From Adineta vaga (Eukaryota > Animalia > Rotifera), in assembly GCA_021613535.1 (NCBI GenBank), contig CP075493.1, positions 18,082,848 to 18,146,847 on the forward strand: a stretch of 64,000 nt of DNA, written 5' to 3'. Below the pieces are notes generated by a model, which saw only the letters and a program-made list of their open reading frames with translations, ran no database searches and had not been told where the DNA came from. Within the stretch, counting starts at the first letter, position 1, and each line of letters opens with the position of its first letter. This document shows, in pieces, positions 2,034-35,100 of this stretch. The position numbers and the translations under genes were made by a program.

Positions 2034-4098
2034 TCAAAGTAAATTCTGATTCACACGGAGAAGAACTAAATCATTAAATAAAGTCTCATTCATGTTCGTT
2101 CTTCTTGATGTTAATATCAATCCGGCATGAGAGAAAACTCTCTCAATGGGCGCTGAACTTGCCTGAACTGAAAAAATTCTTACGATTAAATTTTTAAGAA
2201 TCTTCAGTTGTGAATGAAACCAATAAGTAGAAAAATTTGAACGAACTGGATCGTTCAAAAACGCATCAAGTTCTATAGCAGGATCGAGTGAAGATGGTGC
2301 ATTCGAATTCAGATCAATATTATTATCATAGTTGAATAATTTCCGACGTTTTCTCGGTGGTGTGAAGGTAGAAGAAGAAGCAGAATATACGAATGATGAT
2401 GTTAAACAAGAATCGATATTCATTGGTGCACTAATTGTTGCTGGTAAATCCTTTTTCATTTCATTAATAATCAATTCGATTATGTGCTGTTTTAAACGAT
2501 TTTCTGCTGTAGCAGGCAATTTCAAATCATGGATCCATAAAAATTTAAATGCTGGATCCAAAACAGCACCTATGAAATATATTGGATCACCATAGGCAGA
2601 GTTATCAGCAACATCACCTAAATTCAATCGATTAATAATTCCACCAAAACGTGTTTTAATTGATTGTTCAAGTTGCTGCACCAGTTTAACACATAACGAT
2701 ATATCTTGTCTAACATCACGAAGATGTGAAATCAAATGTACAATAGATGGTACTACTAAACTAATCGTCATTGCTGCTTCTGCTTGACATTTAATTGAGA
2801 TATCATTAAATGGTTGAAGAATATCAACAAGCTCTTCTAAAACAATGAAATCATTATCAGAAAATTTAATTGGATCTTCCATTAAAGATGCAATCGATTC
2901 AAGATCTGTTTTACCAATTGACAAAATGGATTTGACTAATAAAAATTCACTATTCCACCGAGTAATTGTCATTTTGTTGATGTTTTTATTCAATTCTTCA
3001 AGTGTTTCGACAGCTTTTGATGATCTGTGTGAAAATTTGGCAAGCGCTTGACACTTTTTAAGTACTTTTGGTACATAAGAAGAATTTTTCAAACCATCAC
3101 GTATAGATAATTGTAAAGAATGTATAAAACATGATAAACGAATATTCGAAGGATTTTCCACATCATCATAATTGTCAGCAAATGAAACATTCATAAGCTT
3201 CAAGTCATCAATATTTATATCATCTACATTGAAATGATTTACATTATTTCTATTTTGTATTCATTTAAGTAGAAAAAAAATGCTTACGATCGTTGTCATC
3301 GAATGCAGTATTACTATTTGAATTTGGTTTAGGTTCATCGTTATAATCATCATAAATTTCATCATCAACGGACAGGCCAAATTTGTATGCTTTTATCATT
3401 GATGAAGCATTGTCCGTGACTATCTTATACACCTTGTCTTTGAGATTATAACGATCGAGAATAAATTCGGTAGTTCGTTGAATATTTTCACCAGTATGTG
3501 TTCCTTTTAATCGTACAAAATCGATTAAAACTGTTTGTGGTTCACACTTGTAATTAATAAAATGACAGGTCACGCCAATAAATGATCTGCTTCGTCTGTC
3601 AGACCATGCATCAACAGTTAATGTAACAAATTTTGCACCATTTAATGTTTCATAAAGAATTTTTTTCATCCTATTCGCCAAAAATGTAATTCCATCATGT
3701 TTCAATTTTCTCGACGATATGGGGTCCCATTTGACAGTACATTCTTTCATGAATAGACGAAAAGCAGCATTCTCTACTAAACTCAATGGTAAATTACATT
3801 TGATAATTAGATTTTTTGCAATAGACATATTAATACGATCTTGTTTAGTACTACTTGATGATAATTCTAATTTTGATTGACTATCACCAGCATTACCATC
3901 TTCTGATGCATCTTCAACGCGACAACCAAATAATGTTTCATATTCAGATGAATGTTTTCGTTTTAAATGCTTTACGAAATTGCTGACAATTCCAGTTTTA
4001 TCCTTGTAATTGCGATTGCACGGTTTACAATAACCATTCACTCTATTGTTGTCAATAATTGAAAAATCAAAATACTTCTTCAATTGTTCAGCAGCCAT
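2034..4098 (-). CDS. hAT transposase with BED zinc finger, 2 exons (4098-3288, 3223-2034), ~666 aa
   Basis: A 64-bp GTAAG...TAG intron (3287-3224) joins the two ORFs in frame. Motifs: BED finger CKPC...HLKRKH, catalytic DAW, VTDNASSM, CFIHSLQL, TRWNS, LDP, and C-terminal ASSAPIERVFS. Confidence 0.95.
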
Positions 4099-4463: not shown

Positions 4464-4677
4464 AGTACTAAGTACATTGTACTGAGTACAATGTACTTAC
4501 TTTTTACTGTAGTACATTCTACTTAGTACATGTACCATAGTACATTGTACTAAAGTACATCGTACTCAGTACGGGTATTGAGTACAACGTACTACAGTAC
4601 AATGTACTGAGTCCAAGTCCATAGTACAATTACTTAAGTAACAATTATTTGTACTAGTACTTGTCGTACTTGTACTC
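4464..4677. repeat. hAT right subterminal GTAC/AGTAC motif array
   Basis: The same AGTAC/GTACT motifs are clustered just inside the right TIR. Confidence 0.8.
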
Positions 4678-5599
4678 GTCCAATCACTGGAACGCATGCA
4701 AAAAGATGAAAAAACATATCGTAATTACATACAAAACAAGAAACTTGTTTTTCGATATTGTGTCTTCTTGTTGGGTAATAATCTTACGGAGAAGATTATT
4801 TGTTCATCTCATCCCTCCTCAAGATATTCTTGATATAGAATCAATGGTATCAACATGGTATGAATATGGTGCTCGCGCTAGTTTAGTAGGTATTAAAAAG
4901 TGTTGCCCATCAATTGGCAAATATCCAACAATTAGAACAATTGCGTATGGAAGAATTGCTGAATTAGTTAAGTAGATCGTAATACACGTGGATCAATAAA
5001 CATTGGTTTTGATAGTTGATCCGATTCAAGTAAAACTATTCGATGTTCATTTTCGTATTTACATTTCACTTTGTATTGAAGAATTTCAGGTACAAAGAAT
5101 ATACAGGATTGGCAATAATATAATTTCAGGAGGGTAACGATACTATTTCAGGTACCCGTCCAGATGAAAGCCCGTCAAAAACAGAATTTATTAATATAAA
5201 ACAGAGTGTGTCAATAATAGTTTTTAGTGTCGAGCTCACACTAGTTCTGGAAACTTTACACTTTTTCGAGTAAAAAAACCATATAGTGATAATATCAACT
5301 TAAAACAACCAAGTTGTTCTTGCAGGTGTGAGGACAAGGATGGGTGTGAGTAGAATTACCACAAAACGTAGGTTTTTCACTATTATTGATATAGATTATC
5401 AAGTGGCAAGGTGTTCGTATAGAAGACTCACAAAGAATCAATACAGAATACAAGGGTTAAATTCAAGTATAGGAAAAATTGTTTTTAGTGCTGGTTTTGC
5501 TGGTTAGACCAACGATTTCTGTATAGAATGTTTGTGTGAAATATGTTAGGGTGAGTTAGATTGGTTAGTTTATTTGTTCAAGTTAGGTACCCGTCAATA

Positions 5600-6159: not shown

Positions 6160-7049
6160 CTCTCGCAAGAAAGCAGAAACATTGTTGCTTCAGCAAGTGG
6201 TGTTAGAAACAGCGGCTCTCAAAAAGTGGTACGAGAAATTTTAGAGAAAACAGGACAGAAAGTGAGTTATTCTACGGTTCGTCGTGAACGCCAGCGACAA
6301 GGATTAAAACCATTCCATGTTATTTCAAAGCCACTGAAAACAGTCACACATGTTGAGGATCGAAAATGGCTTGCAAATTTCGTTGCTGACTGGACCGAGG
6401 AAGATTTCCTACATATGGCGCCGTCGGATGAATTTATATCTACGTGATAAGAAAACCAAACCATCAAAACGACAGAATTTGGGCAAAATCTGTTGAAGAC
6501 ATCACCGATGATGAAAGGTACCGTGAAATGGTTCGGAACGCAAAATGCATTGGAATTTTTGTTATGTTCACTGCAAAGAAACTTCTTTGGGTTCTGAAAG
6601 GGGATGGTCAATCATGGAATGGCGCCTATTTTCGTGACTTTATTCTGGAGAAACATGTGATTCCATTTCTGCATAACCTAGTCAATGTTGTTGATACAGA
6701 TGAAGTCATATTTCTTCACGATAAGGCACGCTGTATGAAAGCTAATGCAGCACAACATTTTCTGGAAGATGAAGGAGTGCATTTCTGGAGCAATTCGATT
6801 TGGCCTGGCAATAGTCCTGACACGAATCCTGCAGAGAACATCGGTGCAACTATCAAAGATAGAGTTGAAGAGCTGATGGCAAGTGAAGATCCTCAAGATA
6901 GATACAATTATGACGCTCTCAAAACTAACCTTGAGAGTGTCGTTGAGGAGCTAGAAAACGACACGGATCTTTTTGTTGATTTGCTGTGTTCCATGAGGAA
7001 AAGATTTGACGCTCTCGCAGCTGTCAGAGGAGGTCATACCAATTTCTAA
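6157..7049 (+). pseudogene. DD37E transposase, N-terminally truncated, 1-nt frameshift near 6435
   Basis: HTH remnant VSYSTVRR; D1 in PSDEF; D2 in FLHDKA; E in SPDTNPAENI, with 37 residues between D2 and E. Restoring one T gives EFYIYVIRKPN. Confidence 0.88.
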
Positions 7050-7567: not shown

Positions 7568-8618
7568 ATGAATACAACTGTATCGAATCCATTAAGTTAT
7601 CTTTTTCATGTTGAACAACTGATCAGTCGATATTTACTTATCATGATTGTTGTCATCGGAACTTTTAGTAATTTGGCAACAATAATAATATTTCGACAAA
7701 AACATCTACGCTCGACTAGCTGTTCATGGTATTTTATGAGTATGGCTCTCTGCCATTTATTGTATATTGATCTTGGATGTTTATCAAGAGCAATTGCAGC
7801 ATGGGCAGGATTTCATCCAAGTCTTGTTTCATCTGCACTCTGTAAACTATGGTCCTATTTAACAGGTTACCTACTTATTCTTTCGCGTCATTTTTTATGT
7901 TTGATTGCAATCGATCGATGGATGGTGACATCAAGAAATATAAAACTTCGAAGATGCAGTTCCCGAAAAATCGCTCAATGGTTAATTATCATTGGTTCAA
8001 TATTTTGGGCGCTGTTTAATATTCATTTGCTTATTAAGTTTCGTATTGAAATTGGTGACGGTTGTTCAGCATCTGACGACTCTTCGTATTTACTCTTCTA
8101 TATCATCCTTAACTTATGTATTACATTTGTGCCTCTAACTATTATCATCGTATTTAGCTGTCTACTTATGGTTAATATTCAGACAATCGGTCGAGCTCAA
8201 GCACTTTCACAGACAGACACAAGCTGCAGCGTACCACAAAACTCTATACAAAACTCACATCATCGAATAAACGTTCAATTTATTCGATTATCTCTCATTC
8301 AGATAGGCATGTACATTATTTGCAATCTATTGCATGTTCATAATGTAATATATGCATATGTATCACTTCATACTAATACAAGCGTCGAACGAAAAACGAT
8401 CACTATATTTCTTAATATTATGGGCGTCAACCTCAATTATCTCTACACATCAGTACGAAATTTTATTTTATTTCATTTTTTCTGATCTAGCTCTATGTTT
8501 GCTTATTTAGATAACTCTTTTCATCTTCACATGCGCATCAAGAACATTTCGGAAAGAACTTCAATTGGGCTGGCAATATTTGAGTCAACATTTCTTCGCT
8601 CTTTTTTCTCGCATGTAA
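7568..8618 (+). CDS. Class A (rhodopsin-like) GPCR, 2 exons (7568-8452, 8511-8618), ~330 aa
   Basis: Seven hydrophobic segments; TM1 GTFSN; TM3 C...IAIDRW (DRY-like). A 58-bp GT-AG intron restores TM7 and helix 8 (ITLFIFTCASRTFRKEL). Confidence 0.9.
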
Positions 8619-19184: not shown

Positions 19185-19260
19185 ATGCAGATTTTGCTTT
19201 GCCGACGCGTTTCGTGTATTTATTTTAAAAAAATAAGAAACACTCATCAGGGCTCTGCAC
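19185..19260 (-). ncRNA. Type I hammerhead ribozyme in the Athena 3' UTR
   Basis: The minus strand reads GCC-CTGATGA-GTGT...ACAC-GAAAC-GC-GTC^GGC, with an intact core, stem II, a minimal palindromic stem III (ACGCGT), and stem I GCC/GGC extended by TGCAGA/TCTGCA. Predicted cleavage is between 19204 and 19203. Confidence 0.92.
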
Positions 19261-19482: not shown

Positions 19483-21342
19483 TTATCTTGAGTTTCTAGT
19501 ATTTACGAGACGACGTTGTAAATTGTCGACGTTACGAGTACCCAAGATTGGTGTAATGTCATTTATTGGAGATTCAGAAAAGTATTTGAGCCAAAGATTA
19601 TGGAATTTATTCGGAAAGTTCTTCATATTGGAACAATAAGTGAAATGAACGAATATTTTATGACCATAATCAATTGGTCCTTTAGTTTCTATTGGGCTAT
19701 GAATAATTGATAGACGAATATCATTATAATTAGTTATATTCATAGTTTGTTCAATTCCATATTTATAGAAGACATGATTGAATTGTTGATCAATAAATTG
19801 ATTTGGATAGTTATTGATAAGTAATGCCATTTTTAATTGATCTCGTTCATGTTCATATGCTTTAAATGTTGAACAATACCTTATTGCTCTAATTAACATA
19901 GCAAAAGGTATGTTTTTCTTCATATGTAATGGATGAATGCTGTTGAATGGCAAATAATATGGTTCATAAGATGGTTTGTGATAAACTGAAGTAAACAATG
20001 TACCATCTCGATTTTCCATATGTAGATCCAAGAAATCAGCATGTAGACTAATGTTAGCTGATAATTTTATATTGGAATCAATTGTATTCCATCGATCAGT
20101 TTCTTTAAGGAGATGGCGAATTGGCCAATTAATAATAATAAAGATATCATCAATATAACGGACATATAAGCCCAAACTGTTATTAATTTGTTTAATTATG
20201 TCTTGTTCAAAAAAGAACATATAACAGTTGGCAATGGTTAGCGTTAATGGAGAACCCATAGCTCCGCCTTTAATTTGATGATAATATTGGCCATTGTATT
20301 TGAAATAATTATTAGTCATAACAAATCGAGCTAAACGAATAATAACTTCGATTTTTTGACCATCGATTTGTTTAAGATTTAAGTAATTCATCATCTTCTT
20401 TAATGATAGTACTCCTTCGACTTGTGGAATCATTGTATAAAGGTCAGCTACATCAATTGTACATAAGACTGTTTCTTGTTTCAAATTCTTTGAAGACCAT
20501 CTTTGAAGTTTTTGAAGTAAATCAAAGCCACATGTAACAGTTGTCTTAATGGCCATTTGATCAAATAATGGTCTTAATAAATTATCAAGAAACTTGGAGA
20601 TCTTTAAAGTTGGATGTTTTAATCCAGAAATGATTGGTCGAAGAGGAGTTCCTGGCTTGTGAGCTTTTGGTAAATAATAAAGATGAGCTAATTCAACTTC
20701 ATCTACTTTAATACATAATTGCTCATATTGTTTTTGAGTAAGCCATTTAGCTAGGCGAAGATCTAATAGATATTTATTTGTACGAATAATAAGATCAGGT
20801 AATGGATCATGAATACCAATACATCGATAAGCTTGAGTACGATCCATATATTCATTTGATCTTTGTTGATAATGTTCTGATCTTCCTAAATGAAACACCT
20901 TGGATTTATCAGTTTTTCTTAAAATAACATTTGTTGATCGAAATTTATATTTTAATCGTTTAATTAGTCGATTATAATTCTTTTTCTTAACAAATGTTGT
21001 TGTTGAATGATTATCATGAAGATTTTGAAGAAGAGTATCTAATTCAGTAATAAATTCTTGAACTGGACGACCAGGACTAACTTTTTTCTCATAAAAACGT
21101 GTTTCAATTTTTCGTTGTAGAGTAGTTAATTCAATAGTACGTCGTCGAGATGCTGTTTTAGGATCATCATAAATAAATCGAGGACCTAATTTAAGTAAAT
21201 GAGATTCTTCTTCTGTTAATCTAACATGTGGTGCTTCATTGATGATGTTTGGATTTATAATTCCATATTGATTGGAGCCTGAGCCGAAGGTATTATTATA
21301 TTGATGTCGCGTTCGACTCGTTCTTCGGCTCGCTCCTCGGCT
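19483..21342 (-). CDS. Athena reverse transcriptase (~620 codons, entered by -1 frameshift from ORF1)
   Basis: The frame is open from the slippery site to the stop. Motifs: LLKLGPRF, LRKTDKSK, YYLPKAHKPGTPLRPII, DVADLYT, GGAMGSP, YIDD, FLDL, YHKPSYEPYYLPF.S.HP. It ends after the thumb with no endonuclease. Confidence 0.93.
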   Translation of the reverse strand, partial: SRGASRRTSRTRHQYNNTFGSGSNQYGIINPNIINEAPHVRLTEEESHLLKLGPRFIYDDPKTASRRRTIELTTLQRKIETRFYEKKVSPGRPVQEFITELDTLLQNLHDNHSTTTFVKKKNYNRLIKRLKYKFRSTNVILRKTDKSKVFHLGRSEHYQQRSNEYMDRTQAYRCIGIHDPLPDLIIRTNKYLLDLRLAKWLTQKQYEQLCIKVDEVELAHLYYLPKAHKPGTPLRPIISGLKHPTLKISKFLDNLLRPLFDQMAIKTTVTCGFDLLQKLQRWSSKNLKQETVLCTIDVADLYTMIPQVEGVLSLKKMMNYLNLKQIDGQKIEVIIRLARFVMTNNYFKYNGQYYHQIKGGAMGSPLTLTIANCYMFFFEQDIIKQINNSLGLYVRYIDDIFIIINWPIRHLLKETDRWNTIDSNIKLSANISLHADFLDLHMENRDGTLFTSVYHKPSYEPYYLPFNSIHPLHMKKNIPFAMLIRAIRYCSTFKAYEHERDQLKMALLINNYPNQFIDQQFNHVFYKYGIEQTMNITNYNDIRLSIIHSPIETKGPIDYGHKIFVHFTYCSNMKNFPNKFHNLWLKYFSESPINDITPILGTRNVDNLQRRLVNTRNSR

Positions 21343-22979
21343 AAAAAATAACCAGATTGTTCAGCTTCTAATGTTAATCGTTTGGAATATAAATCATAAT
21401 ACTTTTTAAATGCATTGTAAACTTTATTATCATCATTTTGATCTTCTTGATTATCTTCTTCTTCTATTTGATCATGTTGAGTAATATCAAGAATATTTGA
21501 TGATGGTTTTGGTTTACAATTTTCTATAATAAGATCAATTTCATTTCTAACATAATTTCGTTGACGAGTGGTCGTTCTATAATAATATTCCATAGTTTGT
21601 TTTTGAAAATTATTTGTCATGTTGTGCATATCATCATAAACAGATTGAATATCTTCTTTATCAAAAGCTTTTTGATCAATTTTAAATGAAAAATTATTTT
21701 TCTTGATCATTTTTGGTAGTATACCATATTCAATCTGTTTTTGAATAGTATGTACATCTTTATTTTTATTTAGCCAATTTGTTAATTTTGGTTTTAACAT
21801 TAAATGTACATTCCAATATGATGTGGCCTGACCAATTTTCTTAAAAACTTCTAATGCTTGATAATCTTCATATTCTGCATCAGCTATTAGCCGACGTGCT
21901 TCACAATGTTTATAAATATGTTTAACATATAATTTAATATAATCTGCTACATCTGTTGTCATTTTAACATAATCACATGAGAGACGACCACTGTTATGAG
22001 TTGAATTTGTAGTGGTAGTAGTAGCATTATTTGTTGTTGTATGTTTACGATGTGCTGCTAATATTGCACGAAAATTATCAAATTCCATTTGAGATTTTAA
22101 AATAATAGCTTGAGATTTATCAATTAATAATTGATAATAATTAATTTTCTTTTGAACAAAATTTTTAATTATAGTTGAATTTTGTGGTCGACCTTTAATA
22201 CGATTAATAATTTCTTTTGTCCAAAAATCTTTTTCTTCACCTAATTCAAGATAATATTTCCATACTTCTAATTCATATTCTGCTCTTATCTGTTCATCAT
22301 AGATGGGAGCAGTTTCATAAAGAAATTGTTTTGTACCATCACATGTTCGATTATCTTGTAATAATTTGTGTATATAATTTGAGGTATTATTATTGAAATA
22401 ATTGATAAGTTTATTATGTAATAAATAATATCGTGTTTTCTTTTTCTTTTTATTTGTTCTATTATTTGGCATTTGTTGTTGTTGTTGATTATCTTGGTTA
22501 TTATCATTGTTGTCGTCGTCATTATCAATAACAAGAGGATCAAATCGATTATTAGTAATAATATTATTATGTTGTTGGTTTGATCGTTGTTGTTGGTGGT
22601 TACGTTTTTTCTGACGACGAAATGATGATGTTGTAGATTTGTGTTGTTTCTGTTGTTGCTGTGGTGGTGGCTGATTTTGAACAATAAATGGTTGTGTTGT
22701 ATTTGGATTATTATTATTATTATTATTATTATTTGTTGGATGTTGAATATAATTACCTAATGTATTTGGACGTGGTTGATTTCTCGGTCCACGTTTATCT
22801 CTTGAAGATGATCTTCTTCGATTATTATTGTTGGAATTATATCTTTGTTGTGCTAGTGGAGGCGGTGGTGGTGGTGGTGGAGATACAAAGGTTGTAGCAA
22901 TGGGGATTATTGAAAACGAATTTAACCAAATGCTTCTTCGAACTTTGAACGACTGGTTCTCATCAGAATCTGATATCAT
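21255..22979 (-). CDS. Athena ORF1 (N/Q/P-rich N-terminus, basic NLS-like patches, coiled-coil core)
   Basis: A 574-aa open frame directly upstream of and overlapping the RT frame. The first ~30 codons come from satellite-like junction sequence, so the true start is uncertain. Confidence 0.82.
   Translation of the reverse strand: MISDSDENQSFKVRRSIWLNSFSIIPIATTFVSPPPPPPPPLAQQRYNSNNNNRRRSSSRDKRGPRNQPRPNTLGNYIQHPTNNNNNNNNNPNTTQPFIVQNQPPPQQQQKQHKSTTSSFRRQKKRNHQQQRSNQQHNNIITNNRFDPLVIDNDDDNNDNNQDNQQQQQMPNNRTNKKKKKTRYYLLHNKLINYFNNNTSNYIHKLLQDNRTCDGTKQFLYETAPIYDEQIRAEYELEVWKYYLELGEEKDFWTKEIINRIKGRPQNSTIIKNFVQKKINYYQLLIDKSQAIILKSQMEFDNFRAILAAHRKHTTTNNATTTTTNSTHNSGRLSCDYVKMTTDVADYIKLYVKHIYKHCEARRLIADAEYEDYQALEVFKKIGQATSYWNVHLMLKPKLTNWLNKNKDVHTIQKQIEYGILPKMIKKNNFSFKIDQKAFDKEDIQSVYDDMHNMTNNFQKQTMEYYYRTTTRQRNYVRNEIDLIIENCKPKPSSNILDITQHDQIEEEDNQEDQNDDNKVYNAFKKYYDLYSKRLTLEAEQSGYFLAEERAEERVERDINIIIPSAQAPINMEL
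21272..21348 (-). promoter_or_regulatory. Programmed -1 ribosomal frameshift signal (U UUU UUA plus stem-loop)
   Basis: TAT TTT TTA G at 21350-21341 is in the ORF1 frame. Downstream, GGAGC-GAGCCGAAG pairs with CTTCGGCTC-AG-GCTCC, with an inner GTCG/CGAC hairpin. The RT frame is exactly -1. Confidence 0.88.
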
Positions 22980-23135
22980 TCATATTGTCTTTGATTAGAT
23001 GATATCTGAATTCTTGAATTCACTTTTGTGAACGATTAAATAGCCTGATACATTGACTTCAATAAATAGAATTACGCCAATAATTAGATGGATTGCTTCT
23101 ATAATTAGATTGATTGCCCCCAAAAGGGGTAGGTG

Positions 23136-26100
23136 TGAGGCATATCACAATGGGTGAGGGTGCTTCGAAAACGTGTTGCCTTTGATGAAAAATTTCATTT
23201 GATGCTACATTTGACTGATGTGCGCCGGAGGTGTGCGCTGTGCGCCGTGCGCCGTGTGTTTTCCTATAGAGCAATGTTAGCCGATGACCTGTAGCGCACA
23301 TTGATATTTTCTCTTGTATTGATAAAAAACCTTCGAAATGATCTCGATTTCTCATCAATACACACTTGTTCTCTATCTTATCATCTTGCCAGAGAGAGAA
23401 TACATATCTCTTCTCTCTTTGCTGCCTCATTCTCCTTGTCCTTGTGCTCAGCTGGCCCTTCGGGCCATGCTTCGCTTCTTTTTCTTTGAAATTTTCTGGA
23501 TTTCTCATCAAAATGCTTGATATCATTCATGTCTTTGTTAGATGATATCTTTCTTGAACATTCACTCTCTGTAATTGTTGATATATGCACACACTTCAAC
23601 AAAGATGTCTCCTCAACAAGTCTTTTGAGCTATATCTCGATAGAATGGGTGAGGGTGTGGGTGGATGTATGAGGGCATATCACAATGGGTGAGGGTGCTT
23701 CGAAAACGTGTTGCCTTTGATGAAAAATTTCATTTGATGCTACATTTGACTGATGTGCGCCGGAGGTGTGCGCTGTGCGCCGTGCGCCGTGTGTTTTCCT
23801 ATAGAGCAATGTTAGCCGATGACCTGTAGCGCACATTGATATTTTCTCTTGTATTGATAAAAAACCTTCGAAATGATCTCGATTTCTCATCAATACACAC
23901 TTGTTCTCTATCTTATCATCTTGCCAGAGAGAGAATACATATCTCTTCTCTCTTTGCTGCCTCATTCTCCTTGTCCTTGTGCTCAGCTGGCCCTTCGGGC
24001 CATGCTTCGCTTCTTTTTCTTTGAAATTTTCTGGATTTCTCATCAAAATGCTTGATATCATTCATGTCTTTGTTAGATGATATCTTTCTTGAACATTCAC
24101 TCTCTGTAATTGTTGATATATGCACACACTTCAACAAAGATGTCTCCTCAACAAGTCTTTTGAGCTATATCTCGATAGAATGGGTGAGGGTGTGGGTGGA
24201 TGTATGAGGGCATATCACAATGGGTGAGGGTGCTTCGAAAACGTGTTGCCTTTGATGAAAAATTTCATTTCGTGCTACATTTGACTGATGTCCGCCGGAG
24301 GTGTGCTCCGGACCTGTGCTCCGTGTGTTTTCCTATAGAGCAGTGTTAGCTGATGAACTGTGGAGCACATTGATATTTTCTCTTGTATTGATAGAAAATC
24401 TTCGAAATTTTCTGGATTTCTCATCAATACACACTTGTTCTCTATCGTATCATCTTGCCGGAGAGAGAATACATATCTCTTCTCTCTTTGCTGCCTCATT
24501 CTCCTTGTCCTTGTGCTCAGCTGGCCCTTCGGGCCATGCTTCGCTTCTTTTTCTTTGAAATTTTCTGGATTTCTCATCAAAATGCTTGATATCATTCATG
24601 TCTTTGTTAGATGATATCTTTCTTGAACATTCACTCTCTGTAATTGTTGATATATGCACACACTTCAACAAAGATGTCTCCTCAACAAGTCTTTTGAGCT
24701 ATATCTCGATAGAATGGGTGAGGGTGTGGGTGGATGTATGAGGGCATATCACAATGGGTGAGGGTGCTTCGAAAACGTGTTGCCTTTGATGAAAAATTTC
24801 ATTTGATGCTACATTTGACTGATGTGCGCCGGAGGTGTGCGCTGTGCGCCGTGCGCCGTGTGTTTTCCTATAGAGCAATGTTAGCCGATGACCTGTAGCG
24901 CACATTGATATTTTCTCTTGTATTGATAAAAAACCTTCGAAATGATCTCGATTTCTCATCAATACACACTTGTTCTCTATCTTATCATCTTGCCAGAGAG
25001 AGAATACATATCTCTTCTCTCTTTGCTGCCTCATTCTCCTTGTCCTTGTGCTCAGCTGGCCCTTCGGGCCATGCTTCGCTTCTTTTTCTTTGAAATTTTC
25101 TGGATTTCTCATCAAAATGCTTGATATCATTCATGTCTTTGTTAGATGATATCTTTCTTGAACATTCACTCTCCTGTAATTGTTGATATATGCACACACT
25201 TCAACAAAGATGTCTCCTCAACAAGTCTTTTGAGCTATATCTCGATAGAATGGGTGAGGGTGTGGGTGGATGTATGAGGGCATATCACAATGGGTGAGGG
25301 TGCTTCGAAAACGTGTTGCCTTTGATGAAAAATTTCATTTGATGCTACATTTGACTGATGTGCGCCGGAGGTGTGCGCTGTGCGCCGTGCGCCGTGTGTT
25401 TTCCTATAGAGCAATGTTAGCCGATGACCTGTAGCGCACATTGATATTTTCTCTTGTATTGATAAAAAACCTTCGAAATGATCTCGATTTCTCATCAATA
25501 CACACTTGTTCTCTATCTTATCATCTTGCCAGAGAGAGAATACATATCTCTTCTCTCTTTGCTGCCTCATTCTCCTTGTCCTTGTGCTCAGCTGGCCCTT
25601 CGGGCCATGCTTCGCTTCTTTTTCTTTGAAATTTTCTGGATTTCTCATCAAAATGCTTGATATCATTCATGTCTTTGTTAGATGATATCTTTCTTGAACA
25701 TTCACTCTCTGTAATTGTTGATATATGCACACACTTCAACAAAGATGTCTCCTCAACAAGTCTTTTGAGCTATATCTCGATAGAATGGGTGAGGGTGTGG
25801 GTGGATGTATGAGGGCATATCACAATGGGTGAGGGTGCTTCGAAAACGTGTTGCCTTTGATGAAAAATTTCATTTGATGCTACATTTGACTGATGTGCGC
25901 CGGAGGTGTGCGCTGTGCGCCGTGCGCCGTGTGTTTTCCTATAGAGCAATGTTAGCCGATGACCTGTAGCGCACATTGATATTTTCTCTTGTATTGATAA
26001 AAAACCTTCGAAATGATCTCGATTTCTCATCAATACACACTTGTTCTCTATCTTATCATCTTGCCAGAGAGAGAATACATATCTCTTCTCTCTTTGCTGC

Positions 26101-29100: not shown

Positions 29101-32100
29101 TGATGTGCGCCGGAGGTGTGCGCTGTGCGCCGTGCGCCGTGTGTTTTCCTATAGAGCAATGTTAGCCGATGACCTGTAGCGCACATTGATATTTTCTCTT
29201 GTATTGATAAAAAACCTTCGAAATGATCTCGATTTCTCATCAATACACACTTGTTCTCTATCTTATCATCTTGCCAGAGAGAGAATACATATCTCTTCTC
29301 TCTTTGCTGCCTCATTCTCCTTGTCCTTGTGCTCAGCTGGCCCTTCGGGCCATGCTTCGCTTCTTTTTCTTTGAAATTTTCTGGATTTCTCATCAAAATG
29401 CTTGATATCATTCATGTCTTTGTTAGATGATATCTTTCTTGAACATTCACTCTCTGTAATTGTTGATATATGCACACACTTCAACAAAGATGTCTCCTCA
29501 ACAAGTCTTTTGAGCTATATCTCGATAGAATGGGTGAGGGTGTGGGTGGATGTATGAGGGCATATCACAATGGGTGAGGGTGCTTCGAAAACGTGTTGCC
29601 TTTGATGAAAAATTTCATTTGATGCTACATTTGACTGATGTGCGCCGGAGGTGTGCGCTGTGCGCCGTGCGCCGTGTGTTTTCCTATAGAGCAATGTTAG
29701 CCGATGACCTGTAGCGCACATTGATATTTTCTCTTGTATTGATAAAAAACCTTCGAAATGATCTCGATTTCTCATCAATACACACTTGTTCTCTATCTTA
29801 TCATCTTGCCAGAGAGAGAATACATATCTCTTCTCTCTTTGCTGCCTCATTCTCCTTGTCCTTGTGCTCAGCTGGCCCTTCGGGCCATGCTTCGCTTCTT
29901 TTTCTTTGAAATTTTCTGGATTTCTCATCAAAATGCTTGATATCATTCATGTCTTTGTTAGATGATATCTTTCTTGAACATTCACTCTCTGTAATTGTTG
30001 ATATATGCACACACTTCAACAAAGATGTCTCCTCAACAAGTCTTTTGAGCTATATCTCGATAGAATGGGTGAGGGTGTGGGTGGATGTATGAGGGCATAT
30101 CACAATGGGTGAGGGTGCTTCGAAAACGTGTTGCCTTTGATGAAAAATTTCATTTGATGCTACATTTGACTGATGTGCGCCGGAGGTGTGCGCTGTGCGC
30201 CGTGCGCCGTGTGTTTTCCTATAGAGCAATGTTAGCCGATGACCTGTAGCGCACATTGATATTTTCTCTTGTATTGATAAAAAACCTTCGAAATGATCTC
30301 GATTTCTCATCAATACACACTTGTTCTCTATCTTATCATCTTGCCAGAGAGAGAATACATATCTCTTCTCTCTTTGCTGCCTCATTCTCCTTGTCCTTGT
30401 GCTCAGCTGGCCCTTCGGGCCGTTCTTCGCTTCTTTTTCTTTGAAATTTTCTGGATTTCTCATCAAAATGCTTGATATCATTCATGTCTTTGTTAGATGA
30501 TATCTTTCTTGAACATTCACTCTCTGTAATTGTTGATATATGCACACACTTCAACAAAGATGTCTCCTCAACAAGTCTTTTGAGCTATATCTCGATAGAA
30601 TGGGTGAGGGTGTGGGTGGATGTATGAGGGCATATCACAATGGGTGAGGGTGCTTCGAAAACGTGTTGCCTTTGATGAAAAATTTCATTTGATGCTACAT
30701 TTGACTGATGTGCGCCGGAGGTGTGCGCTGTGCGCCGTGCGCCGTGTGTTTTCCTATAGAGCAATGTTAGCCGATGACCTGTAGCGCACATTGATATTTT
30801 CTCTTGTATTGATAAAAAACCTTCGAAATGATCTCGATTTCTCATCAATACACACTTGTTCTCTATCTTATCATCTTGCCAGAGAGAGAATACATATCTC
30901 TTCTCTCTTTGCTGCCTCATTCTCCTTGTCCTTGTGCTCAGCTGGCCCTTCGGGCCATGCTTCGCTTCTTTTCTTTGAAATTTTCTGGATTTCTCATCAA
31001 AATGCTTGATATCATTCATGTCTTTGTTAGATGATATCTTTCTTGAACATTCACTCTCTGTAATTGTTGATATATGCACACACTTCAACAAAGATGTCTC
31101 CTCAACAAGTCTTTTGAGCTATATCTCGATAGAATGGGTGAGGGTGTGGGTGGATGTATGAGGGCATATCACAATGGGTGAGGGTGCTTCGAAAACGTGT
31201 TGCCTTTGATGAAAAATTTCATTTGATGCTACATTTGACTGATGTGCGCCGGAGGTGTGCGCTGTGCGCCGTGCGCCGTGTGTTTTCCTATAGAGCAATG
31301 TTAGCCGATGACCTGTAGCGCACATTGATATTTTCTCTTGTATTGATAAAAAACCTTCGAAATGATCTCGATTTCTCATCAATACACACTTGTTCTCTAT
31401 CTTATCATCTTGCCAGAGAGAGAATACATATCTCTTCTCTCTTTGCTGCCTCATTCTCCTTGTCCTTGTGCTCAGCTGGCCCTTCGGGCCATGCTTCGCT
31501 TCTTTTTCTTTGAAATTTTCTGGATTTCTCATCAAAATGCTTGATATCATTCATGTCTTTGTTAGATGATATCTTTCTTGAACATTCACTCTCTGTAATT
31601 GTTGATATATGCACACACTTCAACAAAGATGTCTCCTCAACAAGTCTTTTGAGCTATATCTCGATAGAATGGGTGAGGGTGTGGGTGGATGTATGAGGGC
31701 ATATCACAATGGGTGAGGGTGCTTCGAAAACGTGTTGCCTTTGATGAAAAATTTCATTTCGTGCTACATTTGACTGATGTCCGCCGGAGGTGTGCTCCGG
31801 ACCTGTGCTCCGTGTGTTTTCCTATAGAGCAGTGTTAGCCGATGACCTGTAGCGCACATTGATATTTTCTCTTGTATTGATAAAAAACCTTCGAAATGAT
31901 CTCGATTTCTCATCAATACACACTTGTTCTCTATCTTATCATCTTGCCAGAGAGAGAATACATATCTCTTCTCTCTTTGCTGCCTCATTCTCCTTGTCCT
32001 TGTGCTCAGCTGGCCCTTCGGGCCATGCTTCGCTTCTTTTTCTTTGAAATTTTCTGGATTTCTCATCAAAATGCTTGATATCATTCATGTCTTTGTTAGA

Positions 32101-35100
32101 TGATATCTTTCTTGAACATTCACTCTCTGTAATTGTTGATATATGCACACACTTCAACAAAGATGTCTCCTCAACAAGTCTTTTGAGCTATATCTCGATA
32201 GAATGGGTGAGGGTGTGGGTGGATGTATGAGGGCATATCACAATGGGTGAGGGTGCTTCGAAAACGTGTTGCCTTTGATGAAAAATTTCATTTGATGCTA
32301 CATTTGACTGATGTGCGCCGGAGGTGTGCGCTGTGCGCCGTGCGCCGTGTGTTTTCCTATAGAGCAATGTTAGCCGATGACCTGTAGCGCACATTGATAT
32401 TTTCTCTTGTATTGATAAAAAACCTTCGAAATGATCTCGATTTCTCATCAATACACACTTGTTCTCTATCTTATCATCTTGCCAGAGAGAGAATACATAT
32501 CTCTTCTCTCTTTGCTGCCTCATTCTCCTTGTCCTTGTGCTCAGCTGGCCCTTCGGGCCATGCTTCGCTTCTTTTTCTTTGAAATTTTCTGGATTTCTCA
32601 TCAAAATGCTTGATATCATTCATGTCTTTGTTAGATGATATCTTTCTTGAACATTCACTCTCTGTAATTGTTGATATATGCACACACTTCAACAAAGATG
32701 TCTCCTCAACAAGTCTTTTGAGCTATATCTCGATAGAATGGGTGAGGGTGTGGGTGGATGTATGAGGGCATATCACAATGGGTGAGGGTGCTTCGAAAAC
32801 GTGTTGCCTTTGATGAAAAATTTCATTTGATGCTACATTTGACTGATGTGCGCCGGAGGTGTGCGCTGTGCGCCGTGCGCCGTGTGTTTTCCTATAGAGC
32901 AATGTTAGCCGATGACCTGTAGCGCACATTGATATTTTCTCTTGTATTGATAAAAAACCTTCGAAATGATCTCGATTTCTCATCAATACACACTTGTTCT
33001 CTATCTTATCATCTTGCCAGAGAGAGAATACATATCTCTTCTCTCTTTGCTGCCTCATTCTCCTTGTCCTTGTGCTCAGCTGGCCCTTCGGGCCATGCTT
33101 CGCTTCTTTTTCTTTGAAATTTTCTGGATTTCTCATCAAAATGCTTGATATCATTCATGTCTTTGTTAGATGATATCTTTCTTGAACATTCACTCTCTGT
33201 AATTGTTGATATATGCACACACTTCAACAAAGATGTCTCCTCAACAAGTCTTTTGAGCTATATCTCGATAGAATGGGTGAGGGTGTGGGTGGATGTATGA
33301 GGGCATATCACAATGGGTGAGGGTGCTTCGAAAACGTGTTGCCTTTGATGAAAAATTTCATTTGATGCTACATTTGACTGATGTGCGCCGGAGGTGTGCG
33401 CTGTGCGCCGTGCGCCGTGTGTTTTCCTATAGAGCAATGTTAGCCGATGACCTGTAGCGCACATTGATATTTTCTCTTGTATTGATAAAAAACCTTCGAA
33501 ATGATCTCGATTTCTCATCAATACACACTTGTTCTCTATCTTATCATCTTGCCAGAGAGAGAATACATATCTCTTCTCTCTTTGCTGCCTCATTCTCCTT
33601 GTCCTTGTGCTCAGCTGGCCCTTCGGGCCATGCTTCGCTTCTTTTTCTTTGAAATTTTCTGGATTTCTCATCAAAATGCTTGATATCATTCATGTCTTTG
33701 TTAGATGATATCTTTCTTGAACATTCACTCTCTGTAATTGTTGATATATGCACACACTTCAACAAAGATGTCTCCTCAACAAGTCTTTTGAGCTATATCT
33801 CGATAGAATGGGTGAGGGTGTGGGTGGATGTATGAGGGCATATCACAATGGGTGAGGGTGCTTCGAAAACGTGTTGCCTTTGATGAAAAATTTCATTTGA
33901 TGCTACATTTGACTGATGTGCGCCGGAGGTGTGCGCTGTGCGCCGTGCGCCGTGTGTTTTCCTATAGAGCAATGTTAGCCGATGACCTGTAGCGCACATT
34001 GATATTTTCTCTTGTATTGATAAAAAACCTTCGAAATGATCTCGATTTCTCATCAATACACACTTGTTCTCTATCTTATCATCTTGCCAGAGAGAGAATA
34101 CATATCTCTTCTCTCTTTGCTGCCTCATTCTCCTTGTCCTTGTGCTCAGCTGGCCCTTCGGGCCATGCTTCGCTTCTTTTCTTTTTGAAATTTTCTGGAT
34201 TTCTCATCAAAATGCTTGATATCATTCATGTCTTTGTTAGATGATATCTTTCTTGAACATTCACTCTCTGTAATTGTTGATATATGCACACACTTCAACA
34301 AAGATGTCTCCTCAACAAGTCTTTTGAGCTATATCTCGATAGAATGGGTGAGGGTGTGGGTGGATGTATGAGGGCATATCACAATGGGTGAGGGTGCTTC
34401 GAAAACGTGTTGCCTTTGATGAAAAATTTCATTTGATGCTACATTTGACTGATGTGCGCCGGAGGTGTGCGCTGTGCGCCGTGCGCCGTGTGTTTTCCTA
34501 TAGAGCAATGTTAGCCGATGACCTGTAGCGCACATTGATATTTTCTCTTGTATTGATAAAAAACCTTCGAAATGATCTCGATTTCTCATCAATACACACT
34601 TGTTCTCTATCTTATCATCTTGCCAGAGAGAGAATACATATCTCTTCTCTCTTTGCTGCCTCATTCTCCTTGTCCTTGTGCTCAGCTGGCCCTTCGGGCC
34701 ATGCTTCGCTTCTTTTTCTTTGAAATTTTCTGGATTTCTCATCAAAATGCTTGATATCATTCATGTCTTTGTTAGATGATATCTTTCTTGAACATTCACT
34801 CTCTGTAATTGTTGATATATGCACACACTTCAACAAAGATGTCTCCTCAACAAGTCTTTTGAGCTATATCTCGATAGAATGGGTGAGGGTGTGGGTGGAT
34901 GTATGAGGGCATATCACAATGGGTGAGGGTGCTTCGAAAACGTGTTGCCTTTGATGAAAAATTTCATTTGATGCTACATTTGACTGATGTGCGCCGGAGG
35001 TGTGCGCTGTGCGCCGTGCGCCGTGTGTTTTCCTATAGAGCAATGTTAGCCGATGACCTGTAGCGCACATTGATATTTTCTCTTGTATTGATAAAAAACC

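Follow-up and report, generated by a model that had tools for sequence, protein, structure and literature searches.

Is a stem kept by compensatory change in the satellite that ends an Adineta vaga chromosome, and where would such a stem come from? The question is raised by the last 64 kb of the 18.15-Mb contig C1 (CP075493.1, positions 18,082,848 to 18,146,847, assembly GCA_021613535.1, 100.8 Mb in six contigs). This whole stretch of 64,000 nucleotides is called the window here. Its terminal part is a tandem array of units of about 535 bp, and the third unit differs from the major unit type in a patch that contains both arms of a hairpin. This hairpin is probably a genuine structural element, one not catalogued before. 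Judging from sequence comparison, we assign a probability of roughly 0.6 to the reading that the stem is a copy of a conserved, covarying helix, which closes a module of approximately 100 nt in the tails of bdelloid retroelements of the Athena/Terminon type.

Two versions of the stem in the array

Two versions of the helix are found in the array, one in the major and one in the variant units. In the major unit, GTGTGCGCTG (23231-23240) pairs with TAGCGCACAT (23292-23301), and in unit 3, GTGTGCTCCG (24301-24310) pairs with TGGAGCACAT (24361-24370). A preliminary description of this DNA had located these four 10-mers correctly, and two pairs are indeed altered on both sides with the pairing retained. 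The 10-bp stem with G-U ends that it proposed is confirmed, with some refinements. Eight of the pairs form a Watson-Crick core (TGTGCGCT/AGCGCACA in the major unit versus TGTGCTCC/GGAGCACA in the variant), the outer G-U pairs exist on the plus strand but become A·C mismatches when the minus strand is read, and the helix conserved among relatives spans 7-9 bp. Outside the patch, unit 3 and the major unit do not differ. The two double-sided stem changes make up four of the 21 substitutions in the patch. The variant 3' arm has a single occurrence in the whole assembly, and the variant 5' arm has two, in units 3 and 17. The features concerned are as follows.

24271-24462 (190 bp), plus strand: variant patch of unit 3, with 21 substitutions and one indel relative to the major unit (alignment)
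24302-24309: variant arm TGTGCTCC, with a second direct copy at 24315-24322 (sequence and motif census)
24362-24369: variant inverted arm GGAGCACA (sequence and motif census)
24279-24381, minus strand: stem-loop module of unit 3, comprising direct motif copies, conserved spacer and inverted copy (covariance model, 70.3 bits, E = 3.7e-17)
23209-23312, minus strand: stem-loop module of unit 1, major type (covariance model, 73.3 bits)
23232-23239 and 23293-23300: arms of unit 1, TGTGCGCT and AGCGCACA, with more direct copies from about 23219, 23239 and 23247 (motif census)
31707-32240, plus strand: unit 17, a chimera, with the 5' arm of the variant at 31790-31799 and the 3' arm of the major unit at 31850-31859

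Units 3 and 17 share an identical left half-patch (10 substitutions and one indel), and both lie in the clean part of the array. Since only the left half of the patch is present in unit 17, its stem has two mismatches. The arm sequence is a repeated motif with 4-5 copies. According to the motif census, GTGCGC has four direct copies and one inverted copy in the major unit and none in the variant, whereas GTGCTCC has two direct copies and one inverted copy in the variant and none in the major unit. At 24296-24312, the variant unit has also gained a perfect local palindrome, CCGGAG-GTGTG-CTCCGG, which the major unit lacks. Another 6-bp palindrome, ATCCGC-TCG-GCGGAT, is seen at roughly the corresponding place of a related locus on the same contig (L006, C1:17.37 Mb). 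The alignment of L006 in the arm region is too weak for it to polarize the 21 differences as an outgroup.

Within the window, the simulation makes chance an unlikely source of this pattern, although there is only one compensated unit. With 20 independent substitutions placed in the patch, at least two double-sided compensations and no broken pair were obtained in a fraction of 2.4e-4 of 500,000 simulations. An 8-bp inverted repeat as such is commonplace and appears at least once in 52% of dinucleotide shuffles of the unit. In single-sequence folds, the inverted copy takes different direct-copy partners in the major and variant units. RNAalifold did not pick the proposed pairing on the plus strand of the three in-window haplotypes. 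The in-window evidence alone, which consists of one compensated unit, one stem-breaking chimera and other fold partners, is insufficient. On this evidence, a concerted change of the motif or a gene-conversion mosaic, with no selected stem, was favoured at first, and the data from other families reversed this choice.

Covariation across motif families

Each unit contains one copy of a conserved 26-30-mer (23446-23475) with the hairpin TGGCCC-TTC-GGGCCA, which has 6 bp and a 3-nt loop. The 26-mer CTCAGCTGGCCCTTCGGGCCATGCTT is near-invariant in L006, L070 and L086-L094, whose flanks no longer align. Nine metagenome contigs were found with the 26-mer as probe, and a metagenome search for a pattern spanning both arms gave no match. 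All nine contigs contain telomere-type repeats together with the same module of approximately 100 nt, but with different arms. In plus-strand order, the module consists of 2-5 tandem copies of a family-specific GC-rich motif (7-14 nt), a spacer, and one inverted copy. The conserved spacer of about 45-50 nt reads GTTTT-CTATAG-AGCAATGTTAGC-GACCTGTA. Seven motif families can be recognized. Their arms are almost wholly different, yet complementarity is kept, as the following arms show.

This array, major unit: direct TGTGCGCT, inverted AGCGCACA
This array, variant unit: direct TGTGCTCC, inverted GGAGCACA
L094 and L006: direct ATCCGCTA(CA), inverted (TG)TAGCGGAT
L092: direct GTACCCTG, inverted CAGGGTAC
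L087: direct AGGACCC, inverted GGGTCCT
L086: direct GACACC or GGGACA, inverted GGTGTC or TGTCCC
L088: direct TGCACCAT, inverted ATGGTACA, with one position G-U on the minus strand
L091: direct GTACTCT, inverted AGGGTAC, with one G-U on the plus strand

The complementary stretch begins at a fixed position directly after the conserved TGTA. In some families, such as L094 (ATCCGCTACA/TGTAGCGGAT), complementarity extends into this conserved sequence. In L092 (67-1029) and L094 (1718-2060), the module is itself repeated in tandem at intervals of about 115-150 nt, and one inverted copy in L094 fits the direct copies of the downstream module (14 bp) better than its own (8 bp).

Covariation was assessed on 14 module instances from the seven families (this array, the L006 locus and the metagenome contigs), aligned by MAFFT with no structural input. 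Base pairs are formed in 72.2% of the cells in the stem columns, compared with 51.2% in shuffles, and none of 500 shuffles reached the observed value; since the instances are related, with several per contig, such shuffle counts are not probabilities, which weakens the case. Eight of the nine pairs show double-sided change, with 23 such cells against 9.7 expected, and the covariation score is 0.46 against 0.19. Controls in which the columns were slid pair in 31-47% of cells. In a swap test, 5' blocks were matched with the 3' blocks of their own or of other families; the longest Watson-Crick helix averaged 7.1 bp for own and 4.75 bp for foreign partners, and two of 20,000 permutations (about 1e-4) reached the observed sum.

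RNAalifold, run on the alignment and on its reverse complement, predicted exactly this helix and no other. A covariance model built from the alignment identified 31 instances in the fetched loci, some of them outside the training set. When aligned by the model, 77% of the cells in these 31 instances pair, versus 49% in shuffles (0 of 500). In the genome of A. vaga itself, where 150 candidates were scored, the model matches only the array units and L006. In minimum free energy folds of the sense RNA, the arms pair in six other families, with z-scores of -4.7 and -5.2 in two of them. In several families, the conserved spacer additionally folds into an inner hairpin. Rfam yielded no matching family on either strand, only chance-level microRNA and small nucleolar RNA matches far below gathering scores. 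The helix is supported because blocks of columns covary across independent relatives above the controls. The earlier claim that compensatory changes preserve a stem thus receives its support mainly from the cross-family comparison, alongside the in-window simulation.

Several observations weigh against this reading. The mismatched arms of the unit 17 chimera break the stem. In minimum free energy folds of the major unit, the partner of the inverted copy is another of the direct copies, and the z-scores are weak (-0.7 to -2.4). In L092, only about 5 bp of complementarity are left in approximately nine tandem modules. A simple stem-loop does not account for the tandem multiplicity of one arm. 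Neither strand of the unit contains an intact hammerhead according to Rfam, and no CUGAUGA core is found. Finally, both strands pair alike (72.2% versus 70.6%). Because of this tie, a helix in RNA, a helix in complementary DNA (cDNA) and a motif in double-stranded DNA are inseparable, and the assignment of a strand by G-U versus A·C pairs was dropped.

Alternative explanations

The motif may instead be a site in double-stranded DNA for a protein, most plausibly the product of open reading frame 1 (ORF1) of the adjoining retroelement. Such sites would co-evolve, and the complementarity would be a side effect. The preliminary description had already offered a concerted change of a protein-binding motif as its alternative. 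This part of it holds insofar as all motif copies switch together between the unit types (GTGCGC, 4+1, versus GTGCTCC, 2+1) and the pairing statistics are equal on both strands; one arm, moreover, is always present in several tandem copies. However, the cross-family data favour the helix. The seven families have near-unrelated motifs beside a conserved spacer, and the specificity of a protein would have to shift each time, while base pairing would not. The complementarity stands at its fixed position after TGTA and runs into conserved sequence in L094, as expected for a helix that closes a loop, and no DNA-binding domain was found in ORF1. We therefore consider a protein site unlikely.

Mutation alone could also keep the arms complementary. 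Short template switches or gene conversion between the arms, together with slippage in the tandem motif copies, would then repeatedly transfer the sequence of one arm to the other and leave a stem with no function, which we regard as just as unlikely as the protein site. Template switching is documented to yield one-step 'compensatory' hairpin changes, in which a multi-base and perfectly complementary change affects both arms of an inverted repeat (PMC8794818). The two unit types likewise differ by clustered multi-base changes; another cluster in the patch, TTTTCTGG for GATCTCGA, makes the variant match an internal paralogous segment, and the local palindrome gained by the variant unit fits the same process. 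Unlike these hairpin mutations, one helix position covaries here around a conserved loop, and a neutral mutational process alone is not predicted to give this pattern, because the same position covaries across many diverged families. The spacer is conserved across families whose flanks are non-alignable, which argues for constraint on the whole module, and many lineages share the architecture as well as the arm position. Nor do the mismatched arms of unit 17 show any automatic correction. An assembly artefact or a chance pattern in a uniform satellite has by far the smallest probability, despite the location of the array at a contig end and the noise in its distal two thirds, which reaches 20 indel events per unit. 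Units 3 and 17 are in the clean part, differ from the major unit by substitutions and have an identical left half-patch. The simulated frequency of double compensation is low, and the covariation across families is independent of both units.

Probable origin in a telomeric retroelement

The array is adjoined by a retroelement on the minus strand.

21255-22979, minus strand: ORF1, 574 amino acids, directly proximal to the array
19483-21360, minus strand: reverse transcriptase frame, 625 codons, overlapping ORF1
19201-19253, minus strand: canonical minimal hammerhead (CUGAUGAG ... CGAAAC GCGUC) in the 3' region of the adjoining retroelement, read by motif
22933-23146: diverged partial unit ahead of the array, aligning to unit offsets 334-534
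23640-23699, plus strand: degenerate telomere-type G-strand repeats TGAGGG/TGTGGG, present at each unit junction and oriented toward the chromosome end

The reverse transcriptase frame contains YIDD, and it has DKS where Penelope-like elements carry DKG. RVT_1 is its only Pfam match, and no endonuclease domain was seen. Its best homologues all come from bdelloid rotifers, and the members of this reverse transcriptase family in the genome are mostly located less than about 2 Mb from contig ends. The hammerhead sits approximately 230 nt downstream of the reverse transcriptase stop. A CUGA[AU]GAG...CGAAA core is also present in the homologous 3' regions of Adineta ricciae and of one sequencing-run contig. 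Rfam at E <= 1 did not report the hammerhead at 19201-19253. The sequence upstream of the ORF1 start codon is homologous to the unit, being a diverged copy of offsets 334-534. A search for a 3' copy of the unit in the adjoining element gave chance-level alignments only, and the covariance model found no significant module on the left flank.

Athena and Terminon elements are Penelope-like retroelements that lack an endonuclease; their tails contain a hammerhead as well as reverse-complement telomere repeats, are truncated at the 5' side by telomere repeats, and occur in head-to-tail arrays (PMC6431247; PMC8557442). The telomere repeat of A. vaga is (TGTGGG)n (PMC8494291). Since the retroelement and telomere context at this locus matches these descriptions, the sense strand of the unit is taken to be the minus strand of the window. 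Reverse-complement telomeric repeats are found at the 3' end of this strand, joined to G-strand repeats, and the array is terminal, with its units head-to-tail. The telomere repeats of L070, L087, L088 and L092 are oriented as in the array units, and in L070 the 26-mer of the unit is truncated and capped by telomere repeats. L070, a third locus in the genome of A. vaga (C3:0.569 Mb), has a head-to-head telomere junction at 5020-5110, where G-strand repeats cap the truncated 26-mer and C-strand repeats follow 12 nt on. A hammerhead beside the 3' telomeric tail is missing from the unit but is found in the adjoining element and in L006. The L006 locus can be aligned with the greater part of the unit and terminates in a canonical hammerhead, which lies on the other strand. 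Altogether, the array seems to have arisen from the non-coding tail of a telomeric retroelement of the Athena/Terminon type. It differs from known elements of this type in that its 535-bp unit has neither coding capacity nor an intact hammerhead, and in that its 77 units share one junction, which suggests an amplified satellite rather than serial insertions.

The unit is probably a composite of a retroelement tail and a short tract of telomere repeats, of which the chromosome end now carries at least 77 amplified copies. Amplification as a satellite is suggested by the fact that all 77 units share the same junction. The array would have grown by unequal exchange of the composite unit and not by 77 separate additions. 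Satellites and retrozymes with hammerheads include newt satellite 2, Sm-alpha of Schistosoma and the metazoan retrozymes. Like the present array, they consist of tandem repeats, each a few hundred bases long, with a relationship to Penelope-like elements. In contrast, the unit described here gives no hammerhead match on either strand and contains only a relic. Two hammerhead candidates in the unit, CUGAUG on the plus strand and the relic UUGAUGAG...CGAAGG on the minus strand, were rejected as both fail at core positions. The minus-strand relic is present in every unit at the equivalent of 23315-23363, with a weaker second copy near 23495-23520. Its hammerhead-like fold consists of GUAUUGAUGAG, a 5-bp hairpin, CGAAGG, and AUC-AAUAC, with which an outer helix of 9 bp is closed. 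Core position 3 is occupied by U and position 15.1 by G. As known from mutagenesis, each of these should greatly reduce or abolish cleavage. The box UGAU(G/A)AGAAAUCC...CGAAG recurs, often in tandem, in L094, L088 and L086, which points to a conserved non-canonical motif rather than random decay.

A candidate role in template recognition

In other retrotransposons, stem-loops at the 3' end serve template recognition. Those of LINEs and SINEs (long and short interspersed nuclear elements) of the 'stringent' type and of the 3' untranslated region of R2 are recognized by the element's own reverse transcriptase. The module resembles them in being a hairpin in 3' non-coding sequence whose stem varies but stays complementary and whose loop is conserved, and in lying immediately ahead of the sequence from which reverse transcription is primed. 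Unlike in these elements, one arm is present here in 2-5 tandem copies and the arms are nearly wholly replaced between families. In the mechanism that we prefer, with moderate confidence, the inverted copy would pair with one of the direct copies in cis, so that the conserved spacer becomes a loop. The helix would form in the sense (minus-strand) transcript or in its cDNA, where the conserved loop would be exposed and allow the element's own proteins to recognize the template.

A different role for the same arms, which we hold to be less probable than either a protein site or neutral mutation, is that of a family-specific address code. The inverted and tandem copies would then pair between molecules, either RNA with RNA or RNA with a single-stranded chromosome end. 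If so, each family would recognize its own kind and add to it head-to-tail, which would explain the rapid and complete turnover of the arms as well as the homogeneous 77-unit array. In an extreme version, the telomerase-related reverse transcriptase may use the inverted copy as a short internal template and copy it again and again, with the tandem copies as its products.

The chromosome ends of bdelloid rotifers are capped and repaired with Athena/Terminon retroelements. To our knowledge, the mechanism by which these elements choose their own RNA as the template and build head-to-tail arrays is not understood, and the only RNA feature so far described in their tails is a hammerhead fold by the telomere-complementary repeats. 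The stem-loop module is not mentioned in the Athena/Terminon literature that we covered, which left out both primary descriptions. A second conserved module with a covarying helix, absent from Rfam, would be a testable candidate for template recognition or self-targeting. It would also serve as a marker to find such tails in other genomes. Furthermore, a seemingly inert terminal satellite would be retaining a structured element from its mobile ancestor.

The terminal array and its assembly

The array has the properties of satellite DNA, i.e. a long head-to-tail series of a fixed-length, non-coding unit.

23148-64000, plus strand: tandem array of 77 units of about 535 bp, head-to-tail (anchor spacing)

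The number of units is at least 77, since the array reaches the terminus of the window; as the window closes contig C1, the array runs off the assembly. For the stem-bearing half of the unit, the array is the only site of close copies in the assembly. A 143-amino-acid open reading frame of the unit, used as a probe, found no relatives. Units 1-24 are near-identical to each other. Units 25-76 differ from the consensus almost by indels alone, with few substitutions. The Adineta vaga AV20 assembly is a polished nanopore assembly (PMC8494291), and the distal indels are taken as long-read noise because the present genome appears to be AV20. From unit 25 onward (36000-64000, the distal 28 kb of the array), the sequence is probably unpolished long-read consensus and not true divergence. 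Apparent arm 'mutations' in units 25-76 therefore have no weight, and units 25, 48, 75 and 76 were rejected as cases of uncompensated arm change.

Other features of the window

The left part of the window contains open reading frames at 2034-4098 on the minus strand and at 6444-7049 and 7568-8485 on the plus strand. A hAT dimerisation region and a BED zinc finger are encoded there, along with a fragment of a DDE_3 transposase and a seven-transmembrane receptor of the rhodopsin type. Short tandem repeats rich in GTACT are located at 1382-1514 and 4465-4640.

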